DNA of 15,008 nt from Octopus sinensis (taxonomy: Eukaryota): contig NW_021825536.1 in assembly GCF_006345805.1 (NCBI RefSeq), forward strand, positions 1 to 15,008. Direction: 5' to 3'. This document shows, in pieces, positions 1 through 15,008 of the stretch. A program made the position numbers and the translations under genes. Below the pieces are notes generated by a model. The model did no database searches, was not told where the DNA came from, and was given only the letters and a program-made list of their open reading frames with translations. Within the stretch, counting starts at the first letter, position 1, and the number at the start of each line of letters is the position of its first letter.

Positions 1-120
1 TACAAAGCTTGATAGAAACAGAAAAAAATAAATATATTAGTAGATATTTAAACAGATGAATAGATCGTAAGCTAACTTGTTACATAAATAGATAGATTTC
101 ACAGACAGACAGACGGTTAC

Positions 121-132
121 ATATCTATCTAA

Positions 133-207
<75 letters not shown>

Positions 208-271
208 GATATCTATCTATCTATCTAGATAGATAGATAGATAGATAGATAGATATATAGATAGATAGATA

Positions 272-334
<63 letters not shown>

Positions 335-335
335 T
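121..335. repeat. (TATC)n followed directly by (GATA)n, forming a spacerless palindrome
   Basis: TATC tract 121-226 switches to GATA tract 227-335 at TCTAGA (224-229). Confidence 0.95.
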
Positions 336-398
336 ACACCTCTATACACTCTAGAGAATACAAGCTAATAAACACACTTCCAATGGATAAATCGATGT

Positions 399-761
399 GT
401 GGGTATATATATAAATATGTACATATGTGTATATATATATATCTATTATATACTTATATATACATATATGTATATAAATATATACATACATATACTCATA
501 TATATATACATTTATATACGTGTACATATGTACGTATATATGTATATATATCCTAATGTACACTTATACATATATGTATATACATATGTACATGTATATA
601 TAGATATATATACACATATTTACACATTATTACATATTTATATGTACGTGCATATGTATATAATATGTATATATATATGTGGTGTATATATATATATATA
701 TATTTATATGTATATATATATGTATATATGTATATGCATATATATATCTATATATATTATA

Positions 762-815
<54 letters not shown>

Positions 816-830
816 ACATAATATACAGTT
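399..830. repeat. degenerate (TA)n/(TAYA)n microsatellite
   Basis: Visible directly; explains the Y/I-rich ORFs at 351-861. Confidence 0.95.
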
Positions 831-1167
831 AGATAAACATCGAGATACTTATAGATATTGATATATGGCTAACTAGAGAAAGTGATGTGTGATTCATAAA
901 TATATAGGTAATACAAATGGTGCTATTTACTTTGAACAAATTTACTGTTTATCTTGTGTGTTTTTATATATTTCTTTGTTGGTTTTTTTTCTGTTTTTCT
1001 TTTACTCTTTCTGTTTGTGTTCTACATATAAGTAATGTATAATTCGGTTCTTTTATTCCATAAGTAGGTATTAATTCGCAATACTAATTTATAACCTATA
1101 AAAATCTCACCTTCCTCAGTGTCTTTTATAAGTAATATTTATTGTTAGCTTCATTATTATTATATAG

Positions 1168-1210
1168 GTCGACGACAGCGGTGAGGACGGTGACGGAGCC
1201 GAACGTTGAG
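1168..1210 (+). other. candidate isolated 43-nt exon
   Basis: GC-rich block bounded by ...tatatAG (1166-1167) and a GTGAGT donor (1211-1216). The only stop-free frame is STTAVRTVTEPNVE. No partner exon or homology recognised. Confidence 0.25.
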
Positions 1211-1260
1211 GTGAGTGGCAGAATCATATAGTGCATTGGATGAAATAGTTTTACCCGTAT

Positions 1261-1719
1261 TTAATGCACGTTCCTATATTTTTCGGTATCTGAAATACGG
1301 CCAGAATCAATATTTGCTTTTATCTTTCCAGGGCTCGATATACCACATACCCGTCGCGTATTGGGTGTGATTCTATCAAGTTCAACATTATACGGTATTC
1401 GATATGTACCGTACGACCAGCTAGGCTTAGATAAGTATTTATACCTATAAATTTCCTGGCCTCGATAAAGCGCATACCAGACAAGTATCGGGTGTGACTC
1501 CATCGTGAATATCGCGTTACTGTAATGAAAATTTACTGTACAACAAGTCCCAGAAAATTTACCGTACGACCACTCTGTAATTTCCTTTTGATAGTAATCG
1601 TTTTTCTTATTTAGGCAATAAGAGAATCGGTGGGAAAAGAGTTCTTGTAGTTCATGGCTACGTCTCTCGAGCTCTAAGCTAGGGAAATGTTTTTCTATCC
1701 ATCCATCTTCTCTACCCAT
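1261..1719 (-). CDS. unidentified 152-aa ORF in non-repetitive sequence; possibly a decayed coding or TE fragment
   Basis: Open stop-to-stop from 1779 to 1264 (172 codons) outside microsatellite. No recognisable domain. Confidence 0.2.
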   Translation of the reverse strand: MGREDGWIEKHFPSLELERRSHELQELFSHRFSYCLNKKNDYYQKEITEWSYGKFSGTCCTVNFHYSNAIFTMESHPILVWYALYRGQEIYRYKYLSKPSWSYGTYRIPYNVELDRITPNTRRVCGISSPGKIKANIDSGRISDTEKYRNVH

Positions 1720-1957
1720 GGCATCTCCTCTACAGAGCCCTATTAGAAGCAGATTGCATAAGATTTTTTTTAGCTGGATTCACAAGCACGACCAAATCAG
1801 ACTGTGGATATCATACAACCATCTCGTTCATGGTCTACCCCAAAATCTACAGATTGATTTATCGCCGGCACGAATAAATCTACCCAAGTCTGCAGTTTGA
1901 AATGGGAAGTCATTCTTTATGAACAATTCTTACTCTATAAAACGAGTGTCTGTTTGC

Positions 1958-2220
1958 TTGTGTGTGTGTGTGTGTGTGTGTGTACGCGCGTGTGTGTGTG
2001 TGTGTCAGTATCTGTGTATGTGTTTGTGCATGTGTGTACGTTTGTGATAGAATGGGCTTTCGTGTGCGTGTTTTTTTCTCGTATGTGTGTGTGTGTGTAT
2101 GTATGTGTCTGTATATGTGGATATGTATGTGTAAGTGTGCGTGTTTGTGTGTATGTGTTTGTGTGTGTGTTTGTGTGTGTGTGTTTGCGTGTGTCTGTTT
2201 GTGTGTGTGTGTGTTTGTGT
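1958..2220. repeat. degenerate (GT)n microsatellite
   Basis: Visible directly; explains the C/V and H/T ORFs. Confidence 0.95.
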
Positions 2221-2644
2221 GATAGAATAGGCTTATACTGCTATGGATCGCAACTAGCGAAAAAGTTTTTCGATTTCGTTTCCCAGACCACTGAGAAGTG
2301 CAAACGAGAAACTCTGAATAAGAAGTCACGCAGATTTAGCCATTAATATAGGAATAGTGGTTCTCGAAGCGCAACACAAACAGTTATGCCACCTCGGCCA
2401 TTTTTTTTTCTTAACCAACAATGTTTTTCAACTCAATATTTACATGCTTTTCTTAACAGATTTTTGTGATGTGCTTCGAAAACCATTATTCCCAAAAAGA
2501 AATATATATTGGCGCTTCATTATCTATTACTTCCATGGGAAAGAGGGGAGGTTTTAGCGCACACGAAGGAACACAATAATATGTTATAAAAGTCTTTATC
2601 CTAACCCCTCTCATACTGTTTGCTTATTCTCTCATGCTTAGCAT

Positions 2645-2760
2645 CTGTCTCATCTCTCTCTCTCACTCTTTCTCTCTCTTGCTCTCTCTCTCTCAACATT
2701 TCGCTCTCGCTCTCTCTTTCTTTCTCTCTCTCTCTCTTTTCTCTCTCTCTCTCTCTCTCT
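2645..2760. repeat. (CT)n microsatellite
   Basis: Visible directly. Confidence 0.95.
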
Positions 2761-2831
2761 GTCATATGTATATACATAAGTCAACTTGCATGAACGGAAA
2801 GGTCAGCACGTAATATTTTAATGTATAACTT

Positions 2832-2928
2832 TTTCTCTAATGAAATTATATTCATAGCATATAAATGCAGTTTTAAAGCATACATTTGTAATTTACATAT
2901 TGAGCACTAATGGAACAGCTGTAAGAAG
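2832..2928 (+). ncRNA. decayed type I hammerhead-like motif
   Basis: TTTCT | CTAATGA | A | ATTA..TAAT | GGAA | CAGCTG | TA | AGAAG. It has a 5-bp stem I and a palindromic ACAGCTGT stem III, with two core substitutions (G5A, A13G). Confidence 0.4.
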
Positions 2929-3135
2929 TAAGGGTTACCACATTTTTAATTATTATTATTATCTTAACTCTCCATTTCTTTCCTACATTTCACTGAACAT
3001 GAATTTCGTATGTATATATATGGTGTTGTGTGTGAGAGAGAGAGAGGAGAGAGAGAAATGGAAAACAGAACCATAAATTGAACAGTTATAACTTCAATTC
3101 AATCTAAATATTTTATAGAACAAATGACACATCTC

Positions 3136-3231
3136 GTAAATTACAGCTGTTTCCGTTTCATTAATAGAACGGAGTTTATCAAGAATAATCAAATCAGTTT
3201 AAATATGTAATAACGCTTCATCAGATAGACA
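3136..3231 (-). ncRNA. decayed type I hammerhead-like motif
   Basis: The minus strand reads CTGATGA AG CGTT..AACG GAAA CAGCTG TA. The core is intact but stem I is only 2 bp. Confidence 0.3.
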
Positions 3232-3333
3232 TATCTACTTAAATATTTGACGAAAAATATCCATTGAAAATATTTATAATTGCTAAGGATATTTAATATC
3301 CCTTAAGTGTATGTTATATATAGATATAGAAAT

Positions 3334-3361
3334 ACACACACATATATATACACACACGCAC

Positions 3362-3419
<58 letters not shown>
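3334..3419. repeat. (CA)n(TA)n microsatellite
   Basis: Visible directly. Confidence 0.95.
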
Positions 3420-3480
3420 GGCGGTGCCCCAGCATGGCCACAGTTCGTGAGCTGAAACTAGATAAAATATAAATAAAATA
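3420..3480 (+). mobile_element. 3' fragment of a SINE with an A-rich tail
   Basis: GGCGGTGCCCCAGCATGGCCACAG..CTGAAAC matches 5541-5578 (GCAGTGCTCCAGCATGGCCGCAG..CTGAAAC), the 3' end of the SINE at 5167-5594. Confidence 0.8.
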
Positions 3481-3774
3481 TCAAATATATATATAATTAA
3501 TTAATAAGGGTGAGAGAATTAGATACTAATTTATAGTATATCTATTCAACACCAAGTGGCCTAGTGCTCCGGCTCCGAGAAACCTGGATTATTATAATAT
3601 TTTATAATATATTATAATATTTTACAAAATAAATATAAGAGAGTGGTCACTATATGGCTCACTCTAGCACCATTAATCCAAAAGGTTTCAACCACAAAAA
3701 TACATGTTTCCCATGAAAGTCAGTACGATTGTTAGCTCACACGGACAGGGCAAAATAAAAATAACAAAAATACA

Positions 3775-3873
3775 GATTATTTTGGGACAATTGTTTCGCT
3801 ATTAATGAATTAAATGTAATTTTACTTACAAAAAAATCCACTTGTAGCTTGTAGCTCGTCAGCCAAAACTATC
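3775..3873 (-). ncRNA. type I hammerhead ribozyme, copy 1
   Basis: Minus strand: GAUAGUUUUGG | CUGACGA | GCUA..UAGC | GAAA | CAAUUG | UC^ | CCAAAAUAAUC. All core nucleotides are present, G10.1-C11.1 pairs, and stem I pairs at 10 of 11 positions. Predicted cleavage is between 3786 and 3785. Confidence 0.85.
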
Positions 3874-4304
3874 TGGATGAAATCCACTCAATCACACGCC
3901 AGATTTTTACCATACGATAAATACGCGTGTGTTCAATTGATTAAATCCGACGTTATCAATGCCATGCCCAACTACAGCGCGCCAAACTTTCACGGAAAAC
4001 AAATACTGCATTAGAATAAATGCAGCATAATTATAATTAATTAATAAGGGTGAGAGAATTAGATACTTTTAATAGTAATATCTATTCACACCAAGTGGCC
4101 TAGTGCTCCGAGAAACCTGGATATTATAATATTTTATAATATATTATAATATTTTTACAAAATAAATATAAGAGTGGTCACTATATGTCTCACTCTAGCA
4201 CCAGTTAATCCAAAAGGTTTCAACCACAAAAAACATGTGTCCCATGAAAGTCAGTACGATTGTTAGCTCACACGGACAGGGCAAATAAAAATAACAAAAA
4301 TACA

Positions 4305-4390
4305 GATTATTTTGGGACAATTGTTTCGCTATTATGAATTAAATGTAATTTTACTTACAAAAAATCCCCTTGTAGCTCGTCAGCCAAAAC
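4305..4390 (-). ncRNA. type I hammerhead ribozyme, copy 2
   Basis: Minus strand: GUUUUGG | CUGACGA | GCUA..UAGC | GAAA | CAAUUG | UC^ | CCAAAAU. Predicted cleavage is between 4316 and 4315. Confidence 0.85.
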
Positions 4391-4469
4391 TTCTGGATGA
4401 AATCCACTCAATCACACGCCAGATTTTACCATAACGATAAAACGCGTGTGGTTCAATTGTTTAATCAAC

Positions 4470-5050
4470 CGTACTGACTTTCATGGGAAACATGTATTTT
4501 TGTGTTTGAAACCTTTTGGATTAACTGGTGCTAGAGTGAGCCTATAGTGACCACTCTCTTATATTTATTTTGTAAAAATATTATAATATATTATAAAATA
4601 TTATAATAATCCAGGTTTCTCTCACCCTTATTAATTATTATAATTATGCTGTCATTTATTTCTAATGCAGTATTTGTTTTCCGTGAAAGTTTGGCGCGCT
4701 GTTAAGTTGGGGCATTTGAATTATAACGTCGGATGTAATCAATTGACCACACGCGTATTTATCGTTATGGTAAAAACTGGCGTTGGATTGAGTGATTTCA
4801 TCCAGATGTTTGGCTGACGAGCTACAAGTGAATTTTTTTGTAAGTAAATTACATTTATTCATTAAGTAGCGAAACAATTGTCGCCAAAATAATCTGTATT
4901 TGTTATTTTTTCTTGCCCTGTCCGTGTGAGCTACAATCGTACTGACTTCAGGGGGGCAACATGTATTTTTTGTAGTTGTTTTTTGAAAACCTTTTGGATT
5001 AACTGGTGCTAGAGTGAGCCATATAGTGACCACTCTCTTATATTTATTTT
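4470..5050 (+). repeat. inverted copy of 3626-4258 carrying a 56-bp internal deletion
   Basis: 4470 pairs with 4258 and 5050 pairs with 3626. The unpaired spacer is 4259-4469. Confidence 0.9.
4805..4894 (+). ncRNA. type I hammerhead ribozyme, copy 3 (inverted arm), with an extra G after the cleavage site
   Basis: TTTGG | CTGACGA (4814-4820) | GCTAC..GTAGC | GAAA (4871-4874) | CAATTG | TC^ (4882) | G CCAAA. Confidence 0.7.
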
Positions 5051-5102
5051 ATAATATATATATATATATTATATATATATATATAATATACCCACACATA
5101 TA

Positions 5103-5160
<58 letters not shown>

Positions 5161-5166
5161 ATATAT
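5051..5166. repeat. (TA)n microsatellite
   Basis: Visible directly. Confidence 0.95.
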
Positions 5167-5326
5167 AGGAAAGGGTGTGTAGTAAGAAGCTTACTTACCA
5201 ACTATTAGTTTCCGGGGTTCAGTCTCGCTGCAGGCACCTTGGGCAACTGTTTTCTACAATAGCCTCGGGCCGACCAAGGCCTTGCGGGTGGATTCCAAGA
5301 AGGAACTGGAAGAGCCCGTGTATATA

Positions 5327-5360
<34 letters not shown>

Positions 5361-5594
5361 TAAGTATACATATTATATATATATACTTTCGTGTGTCTGT
5401 GTTTATCCTCCCACCATCGCCTGACAACCGATGTGGCGAGTTTACGTCCCAGTAACTTAGCGGTTCAGCAAAAGTGCCCGATAGAATAAGTACTAGGCTT
5501 AGAAAGAATAAGTACTGTGGTCGATCTGTTCGACTAAAAGCAGTGCTCCAGCATGGCCGCAGTGAAATGGCTGAAACAAAACAATAATAGAATA
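5167..5594 (+). mobile_element. near full-length tRNA-derived SINE with an internal (TA)n expansion (octopus-type, CORE-like CCTTGGGCAA motif)
   Basis: Degenerate A box near 5175-5186 and B box GGTTCAGTC near 5215-5223. The head is shared with 9741-9907 and the 3' end with 3420-3480. The family assignment is from recall, not a search. Confidence 0.8.
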
Positions 5595-5632
5595 TATATA
5601 TATATATACTTGTATGTATATGTATACATATA

Positions 5633-5667
<35 letters not shown>

Positions 5668-5690
5668 GTATGTATATATATATACATATA
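5595..5690. repeat. (TA)n/(CT)n compound microsatellite
   Basis: Visible directly. Confidence 0.9.
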
Positions 5691-5723
5691 ATCAAAATAA
5701 GCAACAAGGATATACAGAGGTAA

Positions 5724-5811
5724 TGCAGTACGATCGTTTCATGCAACTCCATTTAATTGACCAATACAAATATTACATCAATTTTAAGATGTAGAGCAAT
5801 CTTCAGCTGCA
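5724..5811 (-). ncRNA. type I hammerhead ribozyme (second family)
   Basis: Minus strand: UGCAG | CUGAAGA | UUGC..GCAU | GAAA | CGAUCG | UA^ | CUGCA. The core is intact, stem I is 5 bp, stem III is the palindrome ACGAUCGU, and 10.1/11.1 is a U.U mismatch. Predicted cleavage is between 5729 and 5728. Confidence 0.75.
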
Positions 5812-5827
5812 AAAAAATATAGAATTT

Positions 5828-6003
5828 ATTTAAATTCGAAGGATTCATTTGTATAGTTTTTCTATTAACCAAAATCTACAACTATGGTGTTGTTGATGAA
5901 ACATGTTCTTTTGTCTATCTACTCATCCTCTTTGTGATTTTTTCTACATATTTCATTTAAGTACATATTTTGATAAGGTTTATAAACAACCGAAACATGT
6001 AAA
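5828..6003 (-). pseudogene. probable decayed GIY-YIG endonuclease (3' end of a PLE ORF)
   Basis: One frame from 5980 to 5828 reads NLIKICT*MKYVEKITKRMSR*TKEHVSSTTP*L*ILVNRKTIQMNPSNLN, with FTC just upstream in another frame. The spacing fits YIGxTxxxLxxRxxEH and the terminal PxxLN motif. Confidence 0.45.
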
Positions 6004-6149
6004 ACAAGGTTTTTTCTTGTATTTATATAAAGAAATTTGAATGTACCTAATTTTTAAAAGTAGAATTTTCGTTCCTCTTTTTCATATATGTATGTGTGTG
6101 TATCTATCTGTCTATGCATGCATGTATGCATATATCCATCCACCCATAC

Positions 6150-6397
6150 ATGGTGGTTGGTCCGCATTAATCCGTAAGGAGAATAGGTCGGTTTACCGGT
6201 TTCCCTGACATATATATTCCTTCCTGGACGAGACGCTGGTCCCTCAGAGGATTACTCATCTTTACCACCTGGCGGGGGGGGCAGGAATAGAACAACGTGA
6301 AATGAAGTATTTTTGCTCAAGAATACACTGCGTTGCCCGGTCTCGGAATTGAAACCACAATCTTACAATTTCGAATCCAGCATCCTAACCAGGAAGT
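6150..6397 (-). mobile_element. tRNA-derived SINE
   Basis: The minus strand starts TGGTTAGG..GGTTTCAATTCC (A/B boxes), then TTCTTGAGCAAAAATACTTCATTTCACGTTG, which is shared with 13530-13846 (+) and 11140-11453 (-). Confidence 0.8.
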
Positions 6398-6699
6398 CAA
6401 ATGCATACATACATACCTGTGATTATTGGGACACTAAGATATGTAACACACTGCCTAAATACAAATCTTGATAAATTAGGCTTCTCAAAACCAAAAAGGA
6501 AAAAGCTTATTCGAAGACTATACAGATCCAAGCCATCACCGGGACTGTAAAAATCTGTAAAACTTCCCAGAGGTTTATCGTTTATGTATATACGAGCATA
6601 TCTAGACGTGCAACTGTATGCCTGAGAATATATACGTAAAACACTACATACAAATCTGCACATATACATAGATACACACATACATGCATTTATACATAC

Positions 6700-6830
6700 A
6701 TACATACAAAAATACCCTGTTAATGTTGTTGAAATTCCAATGAAGAAGCCTTGGATCTACGTTAGAAACCGGTTCTATCTCTATTGCTAAGGAATCTTGA
6801 AATAAAACTGAAAAATGACATACTTGCGTA
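6700..6830 (+). mobile_element. short interspersed repeat fragment flanked by (CATA)n
   Basis: Resembles a common octopus repeat that I recall. No second copy in the window confirms it. Confidence 0.4.
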
Positions 6831-7345
6831 CATACATCAGAGTAAATAATATATTAGAAAGTTAATGGTCTACAGTGCAGTGATAGGTGGGTTTTTTTTT
6901 TTTAATACATAGATAAGATAATGTTAATGGCAATAGTTTCGCGCAAAGAAGTTCCTGATTCTTCAATTGTAACTTGAATAAATCTGGCAGATCAGCCATT
7001 TTATCAGACAGAATAAAAAACTAGGCTTCAAATGAGATTTCGAACAATAACAGATGGCACGAAATCGAATGTAAATATTTAACTAAATGAGTAAAAGGAA
7101 GCTATCATTCAGAGCTTATAGAACTGACTGTTTCTCTTGTGGGGTATGCCAGTGCTAACCGGCGGTGCTTTGACAAAATAAATATAAATTATATATTTGT
7201 GCATATATGCAATATAATGTATTAAATATTAGTATTGTGTAATTTTGCAATCGTTGCTTGATATACCACCTGAGAATTATACATTAATAACAAAAACTCA
7301 AACATACGTCTGTATGTGTGTGTGTGTGTGTTTACAACACGTAAC

Positions 7346-7368
7346 TATCATCATCAATATCATCAATA

Positions 7369-7429
<61 letters not shown>

Positions 7430-7481
7430 CATTATTATTATTATTATTATTATTATCACCAACATCATCATCATCTTCGTT

Positions 7482-7533
<52 letters not shown>
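7346..7533. repeat. compound (ATC)n-(ATT)n-(ATC)n trinucleotide repeat
   Basis: Visible directly; explains the poly-I/Y/H/M ORFs. Confidence 0.95.
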
Positions 7534-7534
<1 letters not shown>

Positions 7535-7542
7535 TAATAATG

Positions 7543-7697
7543 TCGGCAGATGGCAGAATCGTTAAAGTGCCATGAAAAATTACAGCTATTCACGATTTGG
7601 AGTTCAAATCTCGCTGAGATAAATTTAGTATTTTATCCCTTAGGATATCCGATGTTATATTTTATCAGTCAAGTATTGAGATCGATAGTATCGATTA
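7543..7697 (+). mobile_element. degenerate tRNA-derived SINE (octopus OK-like)
   Basis: A box TGGCAGAATCG (7551), B box GAGTTCAAATC (7600) and 3' AAGTATTGAGATCGAT. Homologous to 7796-7962 and 13985-14146. Confidence 0.7.
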
Positions 7698-7701
7698 ATA
7701 T

Positions 7702-7702
<1 letters not shown>

Positions 7703-7737
<35 letters not shown>

Positions 7738-7752
7738 ATACGCACACTCGCA
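7703..7752. repeat. (CA)n microsatellite
   Basis: Visible directly. Confidence 0.95.
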
Positions 7753-7795
7753 CGCCTGAAAGTTACTCTCCTTAAATTAGAAATCATTATAACAG

Positions 7796-7962
7796 ATGTG
7801 CGTTGGCTGAATCTTTTCAGCCTTGGAAAAACATACCTTGCAGCATTTCTGCAGGCTTTTTACATTCTGAGATAGAATTTCGCCGTGGTCAACTTCCTAT
7901 TCATCCTTTCAGTATCGATAACATAAAGCCCAAGTCAAGTATAATGTCGATGGAATTGACTG
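7796..7962 (+). mobile_element. degenerate tRNA-derived SINE (octopus OK-like)
   Basis: TGGCTGAATC A box and central TTCGCCGTGGTCAAC..TTCATCCTTTCAGTATCGATAA. Homologous to 7543-7697. Confidence 0.7.
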
Positions 7963-8039
7963 AATCCGATTACCTAAAATAACTGGCTTTTTGCTAAACT
8001 CCGAAGCCATTACGATTCTTTATAATCTGGGGCCTTATT

Positions 8040-8680
8040 TTGTCAAGGTCACATTCTGTCGAGGTCACCTTATGCAGTGGTTACATTCACCTTCCATCCT
8101 TTTGGAACCGTTAAAGAAGTACCAGATGAACACTAGATTAATGGTAATTCCTAGCTTTCTAGTTCCTAGTTTCCTAATTTTCCACTTCGGCTTCTGATAT
8201 TTCTCACCTTTCTCACTTTCCTTCTCATTCACCCCGTGCTTCACGGTGAAGTGATATCCACAATAATTACTTCTTTTCTACGACAACAATGTCAGACTCT
8301 CTAGCCACAATAAAATGGTCACACTAGATGGTGAAGTCCCGCAAGATCTTATACTGTTCGTTTTCATCCACCACTTCCGGTTGGTGCTCACGCCATCTCG
8401 CACCTCCCTTCATGTCATACTTGTGACAGCGCTTCCAGTGAATCATAATGACGATGTTGTCATGCCTTCTCTTGTACTCTTTCTGTGCAAGCATCTTATA
8501 GTCACTAATACTGTGGTTTATTGTTTTACCTTTCTCATTATATAACCTACAAAGTGGGCAAGTCATTGACTTCTCAAGATTGAACTTAGTTTGTTCCCAG
8601 TGCCTGTTCTCGCATTGGAAAGATATGGGCTTAAGTTCCAACTCTCAAGTCGCTTTTCCTAGTCCATTCCCATATCTTCA
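8040..8680 (-). mobile_element. 5'-truncated, decayed RLE-type non-LTR retrotransposon (R4/Dong-like): zinc knuckle and restriction-like endonuclease
   Basis: Across stops and frameshifts: WEWTRKSDL..EQAL..KFNLEKSMTCPLCRL..TINH..LAQKEYKRRHDN..IHW..W.EHQPEVV.EN..KILRDFTI*CDHFIVARESDIVVVEK / IIVDITSP / VNEKESEK.EKYQ. Confidence 0.9.
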
Positions 8681-8919
8681 ATGGCTGCAAAACAATCTTA
8701 AGCACACAACCATGCATGTGCGTATGTAGTATTTGTTTTCTCTGACTCTGCTTACAAGAGCCGTAACGCAACTCTAATAAAACAGTGAGTTTAACTGATA
8801 TAAACTCTACGGCTTGTTATTGTTATCATTCTTTTATATATATATATCTGTCTATCTGATTGTTTAATTTCTAAACAATTCTATTTCTCTGCATTTGTTT
8901 ATATTTACTTAGCGATTCG

Positions 8920-9000
8920 TCCGCTGCTATGTCAGTAAAGTAAGCAAGAGAAAGGCTTCACTTCAACGAAGATGTTCACTGACGCAGAAACATGTCCGGA
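8920..9000 (+). ncRNA. possible decayed hammerhead-like motif
   Basis: TCCG | CTGC.. | TGTCAGT..ACTGACG | CA | GAAA | CATG | TC^ | CGGA. The CUGANGA box is incomplete. Confidence 0.2.
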
Positions 9001-9149
9001 GTTGTCTCCCGTACTGTACTCGCCGGAACTATATGAAAGATTAATATCAATCAACGACTAATAATACATTTGTTCCACTGCATATTTAATTCTTACTTCA
9101 GCTTTTTATGGTCGATGCATTACATATTCTGATACGGACTGACATCTTT

Positions 9150-9264
9150 TCCTTTCTCTTTCCCTCTCTCTCTTGCTTCCTCTCTCCCTCTATCGTATAT
9201 ATACATACACACACATAAATATATATACATATATATTATATATATATATATACACATACACTCC

Positions 9265-9295
<31 letters not shown>

Positions 9296-9311
9296 ATATA
9301 TACATATATAT

Positions 9312-9342
<31 letters not shown>

Positions 9343-9384
9343 ATGTATGCATATATATATATATATGTATATGTACATATATAC

Positions 9385-9430
<46 letters not shown>

Positions 9431-9466
9431 GTGTGTGTGTGTGTGTGTGTGTGTTGTATATACATA
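9150..9466. repeat. compound (CT)/(TA)/(CA)/(GT) microsatellite
   Basis: Visible directly. Confidence 0.95.
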
Positions 9467-9740
9467 CACGTGTTTTATTTACCTTCTTGTGAGTATGAAT
9501 CTATTTATCTTCGTCTATCGTTGTCTAACAATATATTTTTTCACTACCAACCAAGCCTTCTGTTTTACTATTTAACTATTTCCAAGACAGAACACTTATC
9601 ATTATAGCTATCGATCCGACAATCTATCTGTTTCACTTTGATGCGCTTTTTTCTTTCCTTTTCTTATTTTTGTTTGTTTTTTGTTTTTTTGTCTGTTTTC
9701 TTCTTTATCTATTCACATTTGTAGTTTTATCTATGCAAGC

Positions 9741-9907
9741 AGGCGCAAGCATCGGTGAGTGATTAAGAACTTCGCTTCGCAACCAAGAGATCTCAGTTTC
9801 GATACAACTGCACAGCATCTTGAGTAAGTGTCTTTAGTGTATCCTTTGATCTACACAAGTCTTGTGAGGAAAACTAGGAATATGGAAATTGTGCGGAAGC
9901 CTACCGT
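9741..9907 (+). mobile_element. 5' half of a tRNA-derived SINE, same family as 5167-5594
   Basis: GTGAGTGATTAAGAACTTCGCTTCGCAACC..CAGTTTCGAT..CATCTTGAGTAAGTGTCTT..CTTGTGAG..GGAAATTGTGCGGAAGCC is collinear with 5175-5320. Confidence 0.75.
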
Positions 9908-10053
9908 TCAAAAGCTCAATTTTGTCCCGCACGACTAGCTGTAGGTATCCCTTTTACGTTACGAACGTAACGTGGAACAATCAGCAACTTACATTTTCAT
10001 TTAACGAACCGTATGTTCAACTGAACGAACAGCTTAATGGTTATATACATAGA

Positions 10054-10240
10054 TGTGTGTGTGCGCGCGCGCGCACGTATTATGTATATGCGTGTGTGTG
10101 CTTACATGTATAGATAATATATGAACACATATGTGTGTATATATATGTGAGTGTATATATGTGTACCATATGTACGTATGCAAGCATGTAAGTACACATG
10201 TATGTTCATGACGTTTGAATCTTGCTTGCACGTGTGTACG
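10054..10240. repeat. degenerate (GT)/(CG)/(TA) alternating purine-pyrimidine tract
   Basis: Visible directly. Confidence 0.9.
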
Positions 10241-10619
10241 TGTTCGCGTGCATGCACCTGAATTAAAAATACCCATATAACTTAATTTAGTTAAGTGGTG
10301 AATACCAAAGTAACGATGGCAAAGAATGGGGCGACCCTTCAGTCTTGTATGCCTTCAACGAGGGGCAATCAATGAGGAGATATCGAGAAAAGAAATGCAA
10401 TAACAAAGCATTACCAATGAAAATAATTCTGAGAAGCAAAAATAAAAAAAAAGAAGGGAGAGAGATGGGGGGGGGAGAAATGAAGAACAGAAACATTCAC
10501 AATCCGGGCATTCATAGAATTACTAATAACTGCAATTCTTGAAGTTACAACAACAACAACACAACATCGCTCTAATCAAGAAGCAAAATATATAACATAC
10601 AACACACCAATTTGCCACT

Positions 10620-10630
10620 ATATATATATG

Positions 10631-10683
<53 letters not shown>

Positions 10684-10790
10684 TTCTGTGTGTATTTGTG
10701 TGGATGGCTGGATGTGTGTCTATGTTTGCTTTTGTGTGTGTGTGTGTGTGTGTACAAGTATTATGTATATATGTGCATATATGTATAACT
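10620..10790. repeat. (TA)n and degenerate (GT)n microsatellite
   Basis: Visible directly. Confidence 0.9.
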
Positions 10791-11139
10791 ATAAACAGCT
10801 ACATTTTACTTGACTAGAAGCGTTTATGCAAATAACGAAGCGATACAAATCAATCTTCCTTTGTTTTGTTATTTGTTTTTAGCCCTTTCTATTTTCAAGC
10901 GACTTTTAACAAACTAAAGAAAAACTGAAAAAAGTAAACAAAAGATTATCCCATTATCATAATCATAATTACTGACATTATCGTTTCTGATGTCGCTCTC
11001 ATGACAAGTAACACACCAAAGCACAATTGCTGTGACATCAACAAAAAATAACAGTCACATCTATTTCAAATCTTACTCGAACATCGTTTTCAAGAAAGAT
11101 AAGACGCTCTGGATACTGTAGTCTCGTATACTGCAACTG

Positions 11140-11453
11140 GCTCTCTGTCGGTTATGATGACGAGGGTTCCACTCCATCTGATCAATGGAACAAACTGCTG
11201 GTAAAATTGACCTGCAAGTGTCTAAGAACAGCCCCCAAAATGCGTACCTTTAACGTAGTTCTTAGGAAGATTCAGCGTGAAACAACGTGACAAGGCTGGC
11301 CCTTTGAATAAAAGTAGAACTCATTTTTGCTAGCTGAGTTAACTCGGAGCAACGTAAAATAGATTCTTGCTGAAGGTTACAATGCACTGCAAGGAATCGA
11401 ATTCCCGACCATATGGGCCGTATGTTCCTATTCACTAAGACACACACCTCCAC
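11140..11453 (-). mobile_element. full-length tRNA-derived SINE; inverted homolog of 13530-13846
   Basis: The reverse complement has the B box GGGAATTCGATTCC and is collinear with 13530-13846 through ..CAGCTAGCAAAAATGAGT..AAAGGGCCAGCC..GTTCCATTGATCAGA..ACCGACAGAGAG. Confidence 0.85.
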
Positions 11454-11599
11454 ATATATAAAATGTTGGAATAGAATGAGGGAATTCTTCGTAACTGATA
11501 CGTCGTTGGCCACCAATCTACTCGGTCAAGAGTGACCAGCGGTTAGACATTAAAAATAACAATAATAACAGCCATGAAGCATCTAATTTTATGGTTCTG

Positions 11600-11770
11600 T
11601 TTGCTAGAATTAGCAGTCAAACGTCTCTTAAATCGCACTCTACCCCCTGGGAAAGGTTACACTAATCAAGGTATTTAGAAATGCTGAGAAATACAGAATG
11701 GCTGGAATGGCTTTTACAGAAGATCTGCTCCATTAGACATGACCTGGAGAGAAATAACATCAACAACAAC
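11600..11770 (+). mobile_element. diverged copy of the interspersed repeat duplicated at 12444-13160
   Basis: TAGAATTAGCAGTCAAA..AGATCTGCTCCATTAGACATGACCTGG + (CAA)n tail, compared with TAGAAATAGCAACCAA..AGATCTCCTTAATCAGGACCGACCTAGG. Confidence 0.5.
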
Positions 11771-11947
11771 AATATTATACAGTTCAATATTTAAGAGATG
11801 AGGAATTACGCACATTATTTACATTATTTACATTTGACGGATATTTGTTCTCATCTTTTTTATTGTTAACATGACTTATATGGCGTATTGGTTAAGAGCG
11901 CGGGCAACTAACCACAAGATTCCGAGTTTGATTCCAGGCAGTGACCT

Positions 11948-12024
11948 TAATAATAATAATAATTAATAATTAGAAGAAGAAGAAGAAGAAGAAGAAGAAG
12001 AAGAAGAAGAAGAAGAAGAAGAAG

Positions 12025-12060
<36 letters not shown>

Positions 12061-12070
12061 AATAACAACA
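11948..12070. repeat. compound (TAA)n(GAA)n(CAA)n repeat
   Basis: Visible directly. Confidence 0.95.
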
Positions 12071-12120
12071 ATATTGAAAAATACCCTGGGAATGAGAACC
12101 CAGGTTCGAAATTTTCCCAA

Positions 12121-12166
12121 GACACCTGATGAAGGCTGGAGAGTATATCAGCCAAAATGTTGTGTT
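12121..12166 (+). ncRNA. minimal type I hammerhead ribozyme, inactivated by CpG decay
   Basis: GACAC | CTGATGA | A | GGCTG-10nt-CAGCC | AAAA | TG | TT^ | GTGTT. Restoring three CpGs gives the canonical GAAA-CG-UC^. Confidence 0.75.
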
Positions 12167-12443
12167 AGCAACAAACAAGATGAGGACAAATATCCGTCCT
12201 CATCTTATGCAAATAATGTGAATAACAATATTTTACATACAGGGCGTAGCAATATAACCTCTGATTCACCTTTCTTTATAAGCGTTTAAAACGTTTATTA
12301 AGATTTGGGAATCTGAGTTGGGTTTCTGCCGCACCCTGTATGACTGATGTCAAAATCCAAAATTAGCAGCAATAAGAGGAATAAGAGCAGAGTCGGTCTC
12401 AAAACCATCAGCATCAACAACAATGAAAATGTGAAAATTAAAA

Positions 12444-13160
12444 ATCAACAACGATGCTTCAACATAGTCACGGGCAACATGCAACCATGAATTATTTTAG
12501 TTGTGCGACCCGTTTGATGATGAGTGATGTCTCATTCGGCTTATTTCTAAAAAAAAAGTTGCCTCTGCTTGCTCTATATTATCCCCCGACATTTTAGAAA
12601 TAGCAACCAAGAGTCACACCGTGTTGCCTGCACAAAAAAAAAAGAGATAGATTGGATAATGTTGCCCTGTATACACCATACTGAAAAAAAATGGTGTGGT
12701 TTGCTGCAGCGTCATTGATTATAGATCTCCTTAATCAGGACCGACCTAGGGCTAAACAGCATCAAACTCAAGATTAAAAATAAGGGAATCTACCGAAAAT
12801 TAGAACTCAACGAAGATGCTTTTACATTAGCCATGGGCAACATGCAACCCTCGAGCCGATGAAGTTACTGAATGACACGCTCAACGAAAGATTGCCTGTT
12901 GATGAGCCATGTCCCATGCGGATTGTAAAAGGGTACACATGCTTGCTCTGTATTATCACTCGACATTCTAGAAATAATATACAAAATTTATACCCCATTT
13001 CCTTAAAAAAAAAGAAGAATGTTGTCCTGTATACACCATACTGTTAAAACTGGTGTAGTTTTTGCTGCAGCGTCATTGATCACAGATCTCTTTGATCAGG
13101 ACCGACCTTGGGCTAAACAACGACAAAATCAAGTATAAAAACTAATGAAGCTACCGAATT
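12444..13160 (+). repeat. old tandem duplication of a ~362-bp repeat-derived unit
   Basis: GGGCAACATGCAACC at 12472 and 12835; CTACCGAA at 12790 and 13151; shared TGTATACACCATACTG, GCTGCAGCGTCATTGAT and TCAGGACCGACCT blocks. Confidence 0.85.
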
Positions 13161-13529
13161 TCGTGAGTCTTATTAATTCGTAGTTTTTACTATTTATTGT
13201 AGATGTTGTTTCTGTTGTTTAGCTCAAATATACATTTCCCCAATCGCTAACTTCTGTATGTTTTCGTACTTTGCATATATGTTTATTAACATTAGGAAAA
13301 ACTTTGCATCTCTTTACATTCTAAATCTAAATCTCGCTATCGTTCACTTTACGTACTAAACTTGACTTTAAATCAAAATGGTGCGCAATTTTATCGAGCT
13401 TTGATCGTATATTTTTGCTGCATTGAACAAGTGAATAACAATTGTTTTTTCGTCTTCCGAGTGTTGATAAATTAATAACTCCTGACGTGCTGGAATTAGA
13501 TCCACCCGTACATTCCCCTATCGAACTAG

Positions 13530-13846
13530 TGAAACACTAGGTTAGGGTATTAGGCTCACGATCGTAAGGTTGTGAGTTCGATTCCCGGCAGCGCATTATG
13601 CTCTTGAGCAAGACATTTTATTCCACGTTAATCCAGTTCGCGCTCAGCTGGCAAGAATGAGTAATACCTTTAACAGAAAGGGCCAAACTTGTTGCATTCT
13701 GTGTTACACTGAATGTCACCGAGAACTATGTGAAAGGCTCGCGTGCTTGTAGACTGCTCAGACGCTTGCACATTAATTTCAGGAGAATGCTGTTCCGTTG
13801 ATCGGACCAACTGCTACTCGCATCGTCGCAACCGATGGAGTGCCAC
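13530..13846 (+). mobile_element. full-length tRNA-derived SINE
   Basis: TAGGTTAGG A-box region and GAGTTCGATTCC B box, followed by CTTGAGCAAGACA..CAGCTGGCAAGAATGAGT. Homologous to 11140-11453 (-). Confidence 0.85.
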
Positions 13847-13984
13847 GTTTCTTATGAACAAAACCTCAATTTGCGCATTAGACATGCCACAAATAGCAGT
13901 CAAATCTCTATTAAATTAATTTCAAGGATCTTTAAAAGAGAAGGCACGCTGTTGCGTTATATAGTCATATTAGATGAATCGAAT

Positions 13985-14146
13985 GGTTATGGCAGAAATA
14001 TCTTTCATCATAATTCTGGCAGCAGAAGGCTTTACGATGTTTATTCTAAGCCTTTCAGGTCTGAGTTCAAATCTCATGGATATAACTGCTGCTTTACATC
14101 ACTTCAGGATCCGAAGTCAAGTATTCGCCAAGTACTAGGGTCCGTT
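13985..14146 (+). mobile_element. degenerate tRNA-derived SINE (octopus OK-like)
   Basis: TGGCAGAA.., CTGAGTTCAAATC and 3' AAGTACTAGGGTC, as in 7543-7697. Confidence 0.65.
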
Positions 14147-14157
14147 TATTCCCCTCT

Positions 14158-14221
<64 letters not shown>

Positions 14222-14250
14222 ACTCCCACTCTCTCCCTCTCTTTCTCAGT
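14158..14250. repeat. (CT)n microsatellite
   Basis: Visible directly. Confidence 0.95.
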
Positions 14251-14459
14251 CGGTATCTCTTTGGTCCTAAATCACTAGTATGATGTAGCCACTTACAACC
14301 GTTTCTCCAGCACTTGGACACGAAATTAAAGACAGGTTGACAAGGGGTTTCGGAATATTCAAGAACGACAAAAATTATACAACAGTAAGAACAACCACAA
14401 CAACAACACCCAAAACTATCCTCTTCTTCATTATCATTACTACAACAAATATTATACAC

Positions 14460-14641
14460 TATACACACACATAAATGTTTGTCATGCACACACGCACGCA
14501 CACACACATATATATATACATATAACATATATATACATAAATGTTTATCTCTCTCTCTCTCTCTCTCTGTATATATATATATATATGTATATGTGTTTAT
14601 ATATATATACATATATATTTAAGCATACAAGTATTTACATA

Positions 14642-14673
<32 letters not shown>

Positions 14674-14710
14674 AAGGCATGTATATGTGTACGTAGGTAC
14701 GTATATATCA
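14460..14710. repeat. compound (CA)/(TA)/(CT) microsatellite
   Basis: Visible directly. Confidence 0.9.
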
Positions 14711-15008
14711 TTGAAAGAGAGATAACTTTGTTGGCACTTCCTCTAATTTATCCTAATAAACACAATCACAATCTGACAACTGCTTTTTAAAATCGAGTTT
14801 GTCTTTCGTTCTTTCCGATGCCTTCTCGAAAGCAGAGGAATGTCTGTTGTCTTTTCTCTTAATGTGTTTTATTTTTGGTTTCTTTTCTTCTGTTATTTTT
14901 TCCCCTCTCCCTGCAAATTCGGGCCATTTATTTATACATCTATCTATATAACTATCTAATTGGCCTTCTCACAATCAGTGAATCAGAGACTTTGGCTGCT
15001 TTCCTTTC

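Follow-up and report, generated by a model that had tools for sequence, protein, structure and literature searches.

Among described retroelements, the closest in architecture to the element reported here are Sm-alpha and Sj-alpha of Schistosoma, which (Ferbeyre et al. 1998; Laha et al. 2000, as cited in PMC2770079) are short, dispersed, non-autonomous retroelements that combine a tRNA-derived head of the RNA polymerase III (Pol III) type with a hammerhead ribozyme. Our element lies in a stretch of 15,008 nucleotides from Octopus sinensis (RefSeq assembly GCF_006345805.1, contig NW_021825536.1, positions 1 to 15,008), which we call the window and which is AT-rich with many microsatellites. Positions 11873 to about 12222 of its forward strand are, judging by alignment with homologous copies, an old and mutated copy of a tRNA-derived short interspersed element (SINE) family. 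By the same comparison, the family is common to octopod-like and decapodiform-like cephalopod genomes. Sm-alpha is tRNA-Gln-like and carries a canonical type-I hammerhead with loop-loop contacts. Compared by description, the cephalopod SINE differs in having a minimal hammerhead without helix III and a head that cannot be assigned to a parent tRNA.

By ribozyme type, the closest systems are the minimal hammerheads (min-HHRs) in the pseudo-long terminal repeats (pseudo-LTRs) of metazoan Penelope-like elements (PLEs), described by Cervera and de la Peña. These have a base between A9 and G10.1, a conserved G10.1-C11.1 pair, a long helix II, a short helix I and palindromic positions 15.2/16.2 (PMC4209133). 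The SINE family shares the CUGANGA box, the unpaired base before helix II, G10.1-C11.1, a helix II of 6 bp, the GAAA box, palindromic 15.2/16.2 without loop 3, a location near the 3' end and, less certainly, the short helix I. Unlike in PLEs, the motif sits in a tRNA-headed SINE, and there is no reverse transcriptase (RT)/GIY-YIG open reading frame (ORF) or pseudo-LTR nearby. By proposed lifestyle, the nearest elements are the animal non-LTR retrozymes, which are non-autonomous, bear type-I hammerheads and are proposed to be mobilised by PLEs (PMC7229834; bioRxiv 10.64898/2026.07.22.740005); they have recently been argued to be non-autonomous PLE derivatives (bioRxiv 10.64898/2026.07.22.740005). 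Retrozymes form tandem repeats and circular RNAs and have no Pol III head, whereas the cephalopod copies occur singly at dispersed sites, have a tRNA-like head and form no tandem array.

The named cephalopod SINEs are likewise tRNA-derived, as cited in PMC4824008 and PMC4758252. The decapodiform copies of our family may belong to a named Ceph-SINE and the octopod copy to OR1, OR2 or OK. We found no mention of a hammerhead in these named SINEs in the literature searched, and no paper linking a cephalopod SINE to a hammerhead or to PLEs; the collection was limited, and this is no proof of novelty. A full-text literature search for sequence strings of the element returned nothing relevant.

Members of the family consist of a head with internal A and B boxes, a body and a 3' module. 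The hammerhead motif lies in this module, about 60 to 100 nt from the 3' end, and hairpins come after it. In the window, the copy and its surroundings comprise the following features.

11765..11781, strand not applicable: left copy of a direct repeat resembling a target-site duplication (TSD), AACAACAATATTATACA, matching 12221-12237 at 15/17.
11782..11810, minus strand: outer 29 nt of the inverted arm, reading CGTAATTCCTCATCTCTTAAATATTGAAC on the minus strand (sequence and alignments).
11811..11872, minus strand: 5'-truncated copy, in inverted orientation, of the 3' tail of the element itself, head-to-head with the full copy (matches and nhmmer).
11873..11946, plus strand: tRNA-like Pol III head, with A box at 11881-11891 and B box at 11925-11935 (pattern and homologous heads).
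11947..12071, plus strand: (TAA)n(GAA)n(CAA)n microsatellite (TRF and comparison with the other copies).
12072..12120, plus strand: shortened body, with a CCTGGG/CCCAGG hairpin at 12085-12104, TTCGAA, and TTTT at 12112-12115 (alignment).
12121..12166, plus strand: minimal type-I hammerhead motif (descriptor match with 1 core mismatch).
12158..12173, plus strand: hairpin 2, UGUUGU/GCAACA (minimum free energy (MFE) fold and pairing in four copies).
12177..12206, plus strand: hairpin 3, with an 11-bp stem, AAGAUGAGGAC/GUCCUCAUCUU (MFE fold).
12207..12224, plus strand: two 9-nt terminal repeats, ATGCAAATA and ATGTGAATA (direct reading).
12221..12237, strand not applicable: right copy of the TSD-like direct repeat, AATAACAATATTTTACA, 15/17 against the left copy.

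The 3' end of the element probably lies at about 12220-12226, as indicated by the TSD-like repeat and by alignment to decapodiform 3' ends. No second copy of head, body or tail was found in the window. A six-frame concatenated translation of the element had no match among 5.8 billion proteins, and the ORFs of the window had none in the protein collection searched.

The hammerhead motif at 12121-12166 reads GACAC/CUGAUGA/A/GGCUGG-8 nt-UCAGCC/AAA/A-U-G-U-U, then GUGUU beyond a predicted cleavage point between 12161 and 12162. Its architecture is that of a minimal type-I hammerhead with no helix III, in which the palindromic 15.2/16.2 positions stand without a loop 3. Its parts, all on the plus strand, are listed here.

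12121-12125 with 12162-12166: helix I, strands GACAC and GUGUU, 5 bp.
12126-12132: first core box, CUGAUGA.
12133: bulged (unpaired) A between A9 and G10.1.
12134-12139 with 12148-12153: helix II, GGCUGG and UCAGCC, 6 bp.
12154-12156: the G12-A13-A14 positions, reading AAA, with A12154 in place of G12 and A13-A14 at 12155-12156.
12157-12161: A15.1, U15.2, G16.2, U16.1 and U17, reading AUGUU.

A first-pass annotation of this stretch, made by reading the letters alone, had recognised a minimal hammerhead here; the motif is present, but the annotation did not mention that an A replaces the catalytic G12 at 12154. This is the sole core defect of the window motif. The GAAA box is thus not intact (AAAA), and no GAA occurs within 70 nt after CUGAUGA. 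With G12 replaced, the predicted ribozyme of the window copy would be inactive. The cleavage triplet, given as GUC in the annotation, reads GUU in the direct copy (12159-12161), and GUC occurs only in the inverted copy. Placing the cleavage triplet at GTC 12196-12198, inside hairpin 3, proved wrong, the site being 12159-12161; the decapodiform copies have an intact GAAA.

We wrote a minimal-hammerhead descriptor for the motif and applied it to real DNA, searching all loci on both strands, and to first-order Markov random sequence. When no more than one core mismatch was allowed and helix I had to reach 4 bp, the window site was the only match in 415 kb of real DNA, and 6 Mb of random sequence gave none; at the stringency of the window motif there were 0 matches in 16 Mb of random sequence overall. 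When helix I was relaxed to at least 2 bp, two sites were found in 437 kb of real DNA, both in this SINE family, and random sequence gave 6 matches in 10 Mb with at most one core mismatch. Random sequence gave no match with 0 core mismatches and a helix I of at least 3 bp. The Rfam hammerhead models matched nothing in the window or in the two contigs with homologous copies introduced below (L005 and L013), whether at the gathering score or at E <= 10. These negatives carry no weight, because the copy with a perfect core (L013) was missed too.

Other cephalopod DNA was reached through a rhodopsin protein query and a pattern scan of genome contigs, which yielded three further full copies. Two lie on L005, an ENA contig that carries a rhodopsin 78% identical to octopus rhodopsin: L005a at 4200-4625 on the plus strand and L005b at 3185-3480 on the minus strand, each with a 3' module that aligns with 12086-12200 of the window. 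The third, at 4997-5340 on the plus strand of L013, was found by scanning genome contigs with a pattern built from the L005 copies. L013 is a locus of 8 kb on the 432-kb contig CAXXGD010000052.1, which is filed as 'MAG: Rhodospirillales bacterium' (MAG, metagenome-assembled genome). It has 36% GC, a cephalopod-type SINE and RTE-like long interspersed element (LINE) ORFs with APE and RT remnants. Because of this GC content and these ORFs we read it as almost certainly host DNA, and mis-binning of animal DNA appears to have placed the contig in a bacterial MAG.

All four full copies, from three unrelated contigs, have the same order of head, body, hammerhead motif and tail. The constant linkage of head and hammerhead tail, put forward as a check by the first-pass annotation, was thus borne out in the three further copies on two other cephalopod contigs, although the sample is small. 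No copy was found at the Octopus vulgaris rhodopsin locus (L004, 24 kb), in the ENA contigs that hold the LINE of the window at 75-77% identity (L002-L003 and L006-L011) or in a transcript (L012). A metagenome scan with GATGAGRACAAATATCCGTC gave a single chance bacterial match (L001), and five viral-contig scans and the first genome-contig scan gave nothing. A partial tail at 9645-9730 of L005 was weak and judged not significant. On L005, the two copies stand head-to-head about 700 bp apart, either by chance or through a complex insertion. Within L005a, at 4399-4476, a stretch of 35 nt is duplicated almost perfectly in inverted orientation, so that a long hairpin forms; L005b and L013 lack this duplication, and Rfam miRNA-like matches there are spurious.

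The core boxes of the four copies are as follows.

Window: CUGAUGA and AAA-AUGU-U.
L005a: CAGAAGA and GAA-ACGU-U.
L005b: CUUAAGA and GAA-ACGU-U.
L013: CUGAAGA and GAA-ACGU-A, with 0 core mismatches.

The window copy, L005a and L005b each have one core substitution, all different. Since L013 is perfect and every other copy has a different single defect, the family consensus has a complete core, CUGAAGA-A-GGCYGG...UCGGCY-GAAA-CG-U-H. The GAAA box is intact, G12 included, in L005a, L005b and L013, and the bulged A is kept in all four copies. Helix II is paired in 96% of cells across the four copies; one pair covaries (U-A/U-G/C-G), and two copies close the helix with G-C, the other two with G-U. 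Counted contiguously from position 1.1, helix I has five pairs in the window, three in L013 and none in L005a or L005b. We consider the motif very probably a genuine relative of the PLE min-HHRs.

The Pol III motifs of the head named in the first-pass annotation are where it had put them, with the A box TGGCGTATTGG at 11881-11891 and the B box AGTTTGATTCC at 11925-11935. The A-box/B-box pattern matches once in the window, whereas 0.075 matches are expected in a shuffled window. The window head is homologous to the heads of L005a and L013 (GGACACATRGCRTAACGGTTATAGGCG), which carry better A and B boxes (TAGCATAACGG / GGTTCAATCC). The 5' end of the family, GGACACATRGC in L005a and L013, aligns with (T)GACTTATATGGC in the window, and the 5' end of the direct copy is placed at 11872/11873 on that ground. 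ARAGORN found no tRNA in the window or L005, and the Rfam tRNA model had no match at E <= 10 in the window, L005 or L013. The window head has no cloverleaf (fold z-score +1.05).

Downstream of the head, a (TAA)(GAA)(CAA) linker had been described as part of the element. The arrays are real, TRF giving (AGA)18 at 11972-12026 and (AAC)16 at 12025-12071 with TAA repeats before them, but none of the other three copies has anything equivalent, their sequence at this place being ...GATTAACAATACAGGAATAC.... The block is therefore a later, secondary microsatellite expansion and not a part of the family. The window body aligns to the hairpin and TTCGA region of the decapodiform copies and lacks a central region of about 100 nt. 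Elsewhere in the window, at 7553-7625 on the plus strand, there is a second, unrelated tRNA-like SINE head with an A-box-like TGGCAGAATCG and a B box GAGTTCAAATCTC. This head directly follows a (TAT)n(ATC)n array and precedes (CA)n (repeats at 7367-7534 and 7703-7747); it is the second SINE head of the window to adjoin trinucleotide repeats.

PLE insertions characteristically carry an inverted, 5'-truncated copy at their 5' end and a one-sided 'tail' of 30-40 bp, and they are biased towards microsatellites (PMC8557442). The window copy has the first of these. As the first-pass annotation had stated, the reverse complement of 11836-11875 matches 12159-12198 at 34/40 without gaps, a count that we reproduced exactly; when the region was shuffled 30 times, the counts were 19-25. 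Allowing two small gaps extends the match outward to 11815 and 12225. The gapped match of 11815-11884 with 12151-12225 has a local score of 37 (shuffles, 12.7 +/- 2.6), blastn of the inverted arms gives an E of about 1e-9, and the arms are 78-85% identical. A search with nhmmer and the family profile returned a minus-strand match at 11877-11835. The inverted copy is the tail alone, 5'-truncated, and abuts the 5' end of the full copy without a spacer. Inward, ungapped similarity ends at 11875/12159, and beyond that point 5 of 15 bases match. A continuation of the inverted repeat as far as 12151/11884 was discarded, the match there being weak (10/15 with gaps, 5/15 without); those bases belong to the head.

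The first-pass annotation had the inverted copy begin at the G of a GUC triplet, 3 nt from the scissile bond. The proximity stands, but the family 5' end puts the junction at 11872/11873. With this placement, the inverted copy starts, on the minus strand, with AUGUUAAC... or UGUUAAC..., that is, at hammerhead position 1.1 or 1.2. If GTC 11873-11875 is assigned to the inverted copy instead, the start shifts 3 nt upstream. Under either assignment the junction is 0-3 nt from the predicted scissile bond.

The whole composite is flanked by the direct repeat 11765-11781/12221-12237. A match of this 15/17 grade occurs in 2.6% of random segment pairs with the same spacing in the window and in 0 of 1000 shuffles. 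The first-pass annotation had named the absence of LINE-type TSDs as a check, and this TSD-like repeat speaks against such an absence. Its position around the composite suggests a single insertion event. Around L005a and L013 no clear TSD was seen, by eye only, and the window region is AT-rich.

Resemblance to PLE insertions extends to an inverted, 5'-truncated copy that abuts the 5' end, so that inverted repeats enclose the unit. The 29 nt at 11782-11810 may be a one-sided extension as in PLEs, but can also be explained as a rearranged, displaced 3' strand of hairpin 3: they contain TTCCTCATC, complementary to GATGAGAA at 11849-11856, and include the complement of the hairpin-3 strand. Unlike PLE insertions, the family has the inverted copy in one copy only, and no partial tandem (pseudo-LTR) is present. 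TRF and repeat searches showed no tandem, pseudo-LTR-like arrangement of the unit, and all copies are single.

At the 3' end of the window copy, the MFE fold of 12110-12215 contains hairpins 2 and 3 (z = -4.4). Decapodiform copies have a shorter AGAC/GUCU stem at the position of hairpin 3. The 9-nt terminal units number two in the direct copy and three in the inverted copy.

We think it rather probable that the 3' module derives from the 3' end (pseudo-LTR) of a PLE and that the SINE is transcribed by Pol III and copied by PLE RT and endonuclease. Under this model, the SINE would have acquired the 3' end of a PLE, hammerhead included; Pol III would transcribe it, and the PLE enzymes would copy its RNA, typically leaving an inverted, 5'-truncated copy at the 5' end. 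Cephalopods do carry PLEs (PMC8557442). Because it has no helix III, the predicted hammerhead could act only as a dimer. More tentatively, and with more doubt than confidence, we speculate that the hammerhead, as a dimer, cut some transcripts and that the inverted copy was templated by the 3' product as part of one and the same insertion. Such a product would retain the tail recognised by the RT and could serve as template for the inverted partner.

Taken as a whole, a SINE bearing a PLE-type hammerhead and copied by PLE machinery together with an inverted tail is the explanation that we favour, and on the present comparison we hold it to be evenly poised between right and wrong. The first-pass annotation had likewise proposed a Pol III-driven, ribozyme-processed element that uses PLE machinery. 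Its unity as one element, the PLE-type motif and the PLE-like inversion are kept here, but the presumably inactive ribozyme of the window copy and a TTTT upstream of it do not fit that proposal.

Several observations weigh against the favoured explanation. For the window copy itself, besides the G12 defect, the TTTT at 12112-12115 lies upstream of the hammerhead, and TTTT runs are terminator-like signals for Pol III. It would probably stop transcription before the hammerhead; the other copies have no TTTT. Helix I is paired in only 55% of cells across the four copies. Hairpin 2, which excludes helix I, is paired in 95%, shows one compensatory double change from G-C to A-U and contains G16.2-U16.1-H17, so burying the predicted cleavage site. 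Core positions are not clearly more conserved than the surrounding sequence, and the comparison has only four copies, of which one has an inverted tail. No partial tail in either orientation lies beside L005a or L005b, and a search of L013 with the family profile gave one full copy only, with no inverted partner. The chance that a breakpoint falls within +/-3 nt of a named site in an element of about 340 nt is about 2%, a post hoc estimate. Stalling of the RT ahead of the GC-rich helix II could also have set the breakpoint. TSDs of 17 nt are just as typical of insertion by LINEs, and 9-nt tandem terminal repeats after a stem-loop recall the tails of L2/CR1-type LINEs and SINEs. Finally, PLE min-HHRs cleave poorly in vitro (PMC4209133).

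Some of these points would be expected of an ordinary LINE-dependent SINE whose tail is recognised by an L2/CR1-like LINE, with the hammerhead-like boxes a relic or coincidence and the inversion produced by template switching or second-strand priming in target-primed reverse transcription. The varying number of terminal 9-mers (two against three) after an 11-bp stem-loop, the 17-nt TSD-like repeat around the composite and the conservation of hairpins 2 and 3 rather than helix I all suit this explanation, and a CR1/L2-like LINE fragment is present in the same window, at about 7760-8700. However, neither of the two LINE fragments compared resembles the SINE tail: the 3' end of the window LINE is unlike it, as is the RTE beside L013. 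Twin priming, moreover, inverts an upstream segment of the RNA without duplicating the 3' end, and chance is very unlikely to have produced a complete min-HHR core together with all four accessory PLE-type traits at homologous positions. We consider LINE dependence unlikely.

The composite might instead record two independent insertions in opposite orientations, one of them, whether the earlier or the later, being a 5'-truncated member of the same family, whose abutment and match to the cleavage site would be coincidence or a target-site preference. Nested insertions are common in SINE-rich genomes, the other three copies have no inverted partner, and arms only 78-85% identical imply that both are old, with indistinguishable relative ages. 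Yet there is zero spacer at the junction, the breakpoint falls so close to the predicted site, and a single 15/17 repeat flanks the composite rather than each part, which makes two insertions distinctly unlikely in our judgement. A DNA-level foldback element or miniature inverted-repeat transposable element, with terminal inverted repeats that enclose a SINE fragment by chance, would account for the inverted arms of 60-70 nt, the flanking direct repeat and the folding of the single strand as one long hairpin (z = -4.3). We regard it as extremely improbable, since the right arm is nothing but the usual 3' tail of the SINE family; in addition, the other copies have no left arm, no other copy of an arm occurs in the window or the loci, and no dispersed arm pairs without a SINE head were seen.

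Other features of the window lie outside the element. At about 7760-8700 on the minus strand is the 3' part of a degenerate LINE ORF with frame breaks and a zf-RVT-like C-terminus (CPLC...RHD...ILRDFTI). ORFs on long ENA contigs share 65-69% identity with this LINE ORF, and proteins of coral (67%) and sponge (50%) match it too. A 60-nt imperfect palindrome, CUCUGAUUC...GAAUCUGAG, lies some 35 nt past the element, at 12259-12317 on the plus strand, with an MFE of -22.8 kcal/mol (z = -3.9) and weak mir-39-like Rfam matches on both strands. Interspersed repeats at 5184-5593 and 3425-3495 are 77-85% identical to two places near the Octopus vulgaris rhodopsin gene (OX597836.1); among the sequence comparisons, they are the one direct sign that the window is octopod-like.

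The role of PLE hammerheads is unclear (PMC4209133, PMC8557442), and it is here that the SINE family may be informative. In its fullest form, our proposal is that a Pol III SINE of coleoids parasitises PLEs through a borrowed pseudo-LTR end, that its hammerhead cuts in vivo and that the 3' product becomes the inverted copy; we consider this whole chain somewhat unlikely. If it were true, the window would hold a genomic fossil of ribozyme cleavage, which would explain the origin of PLE-type inverted repeats. A short, abundant tRNA-headed element with the PLE ribozyme type offers thousands of insertion junctions per genome, and a pile-up at hammerhead position 1.1 of the 5' ends of truncated or inverted copies would be direct evidence both of an in vivo cut and of a template end defined by that cut in retrotransposition of the PLE type. 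The element would also be a case, beyond the flatworms, of a SINE paired with a PLE rather than a LINE, and its family would be conserved across the split between octopus and squid.

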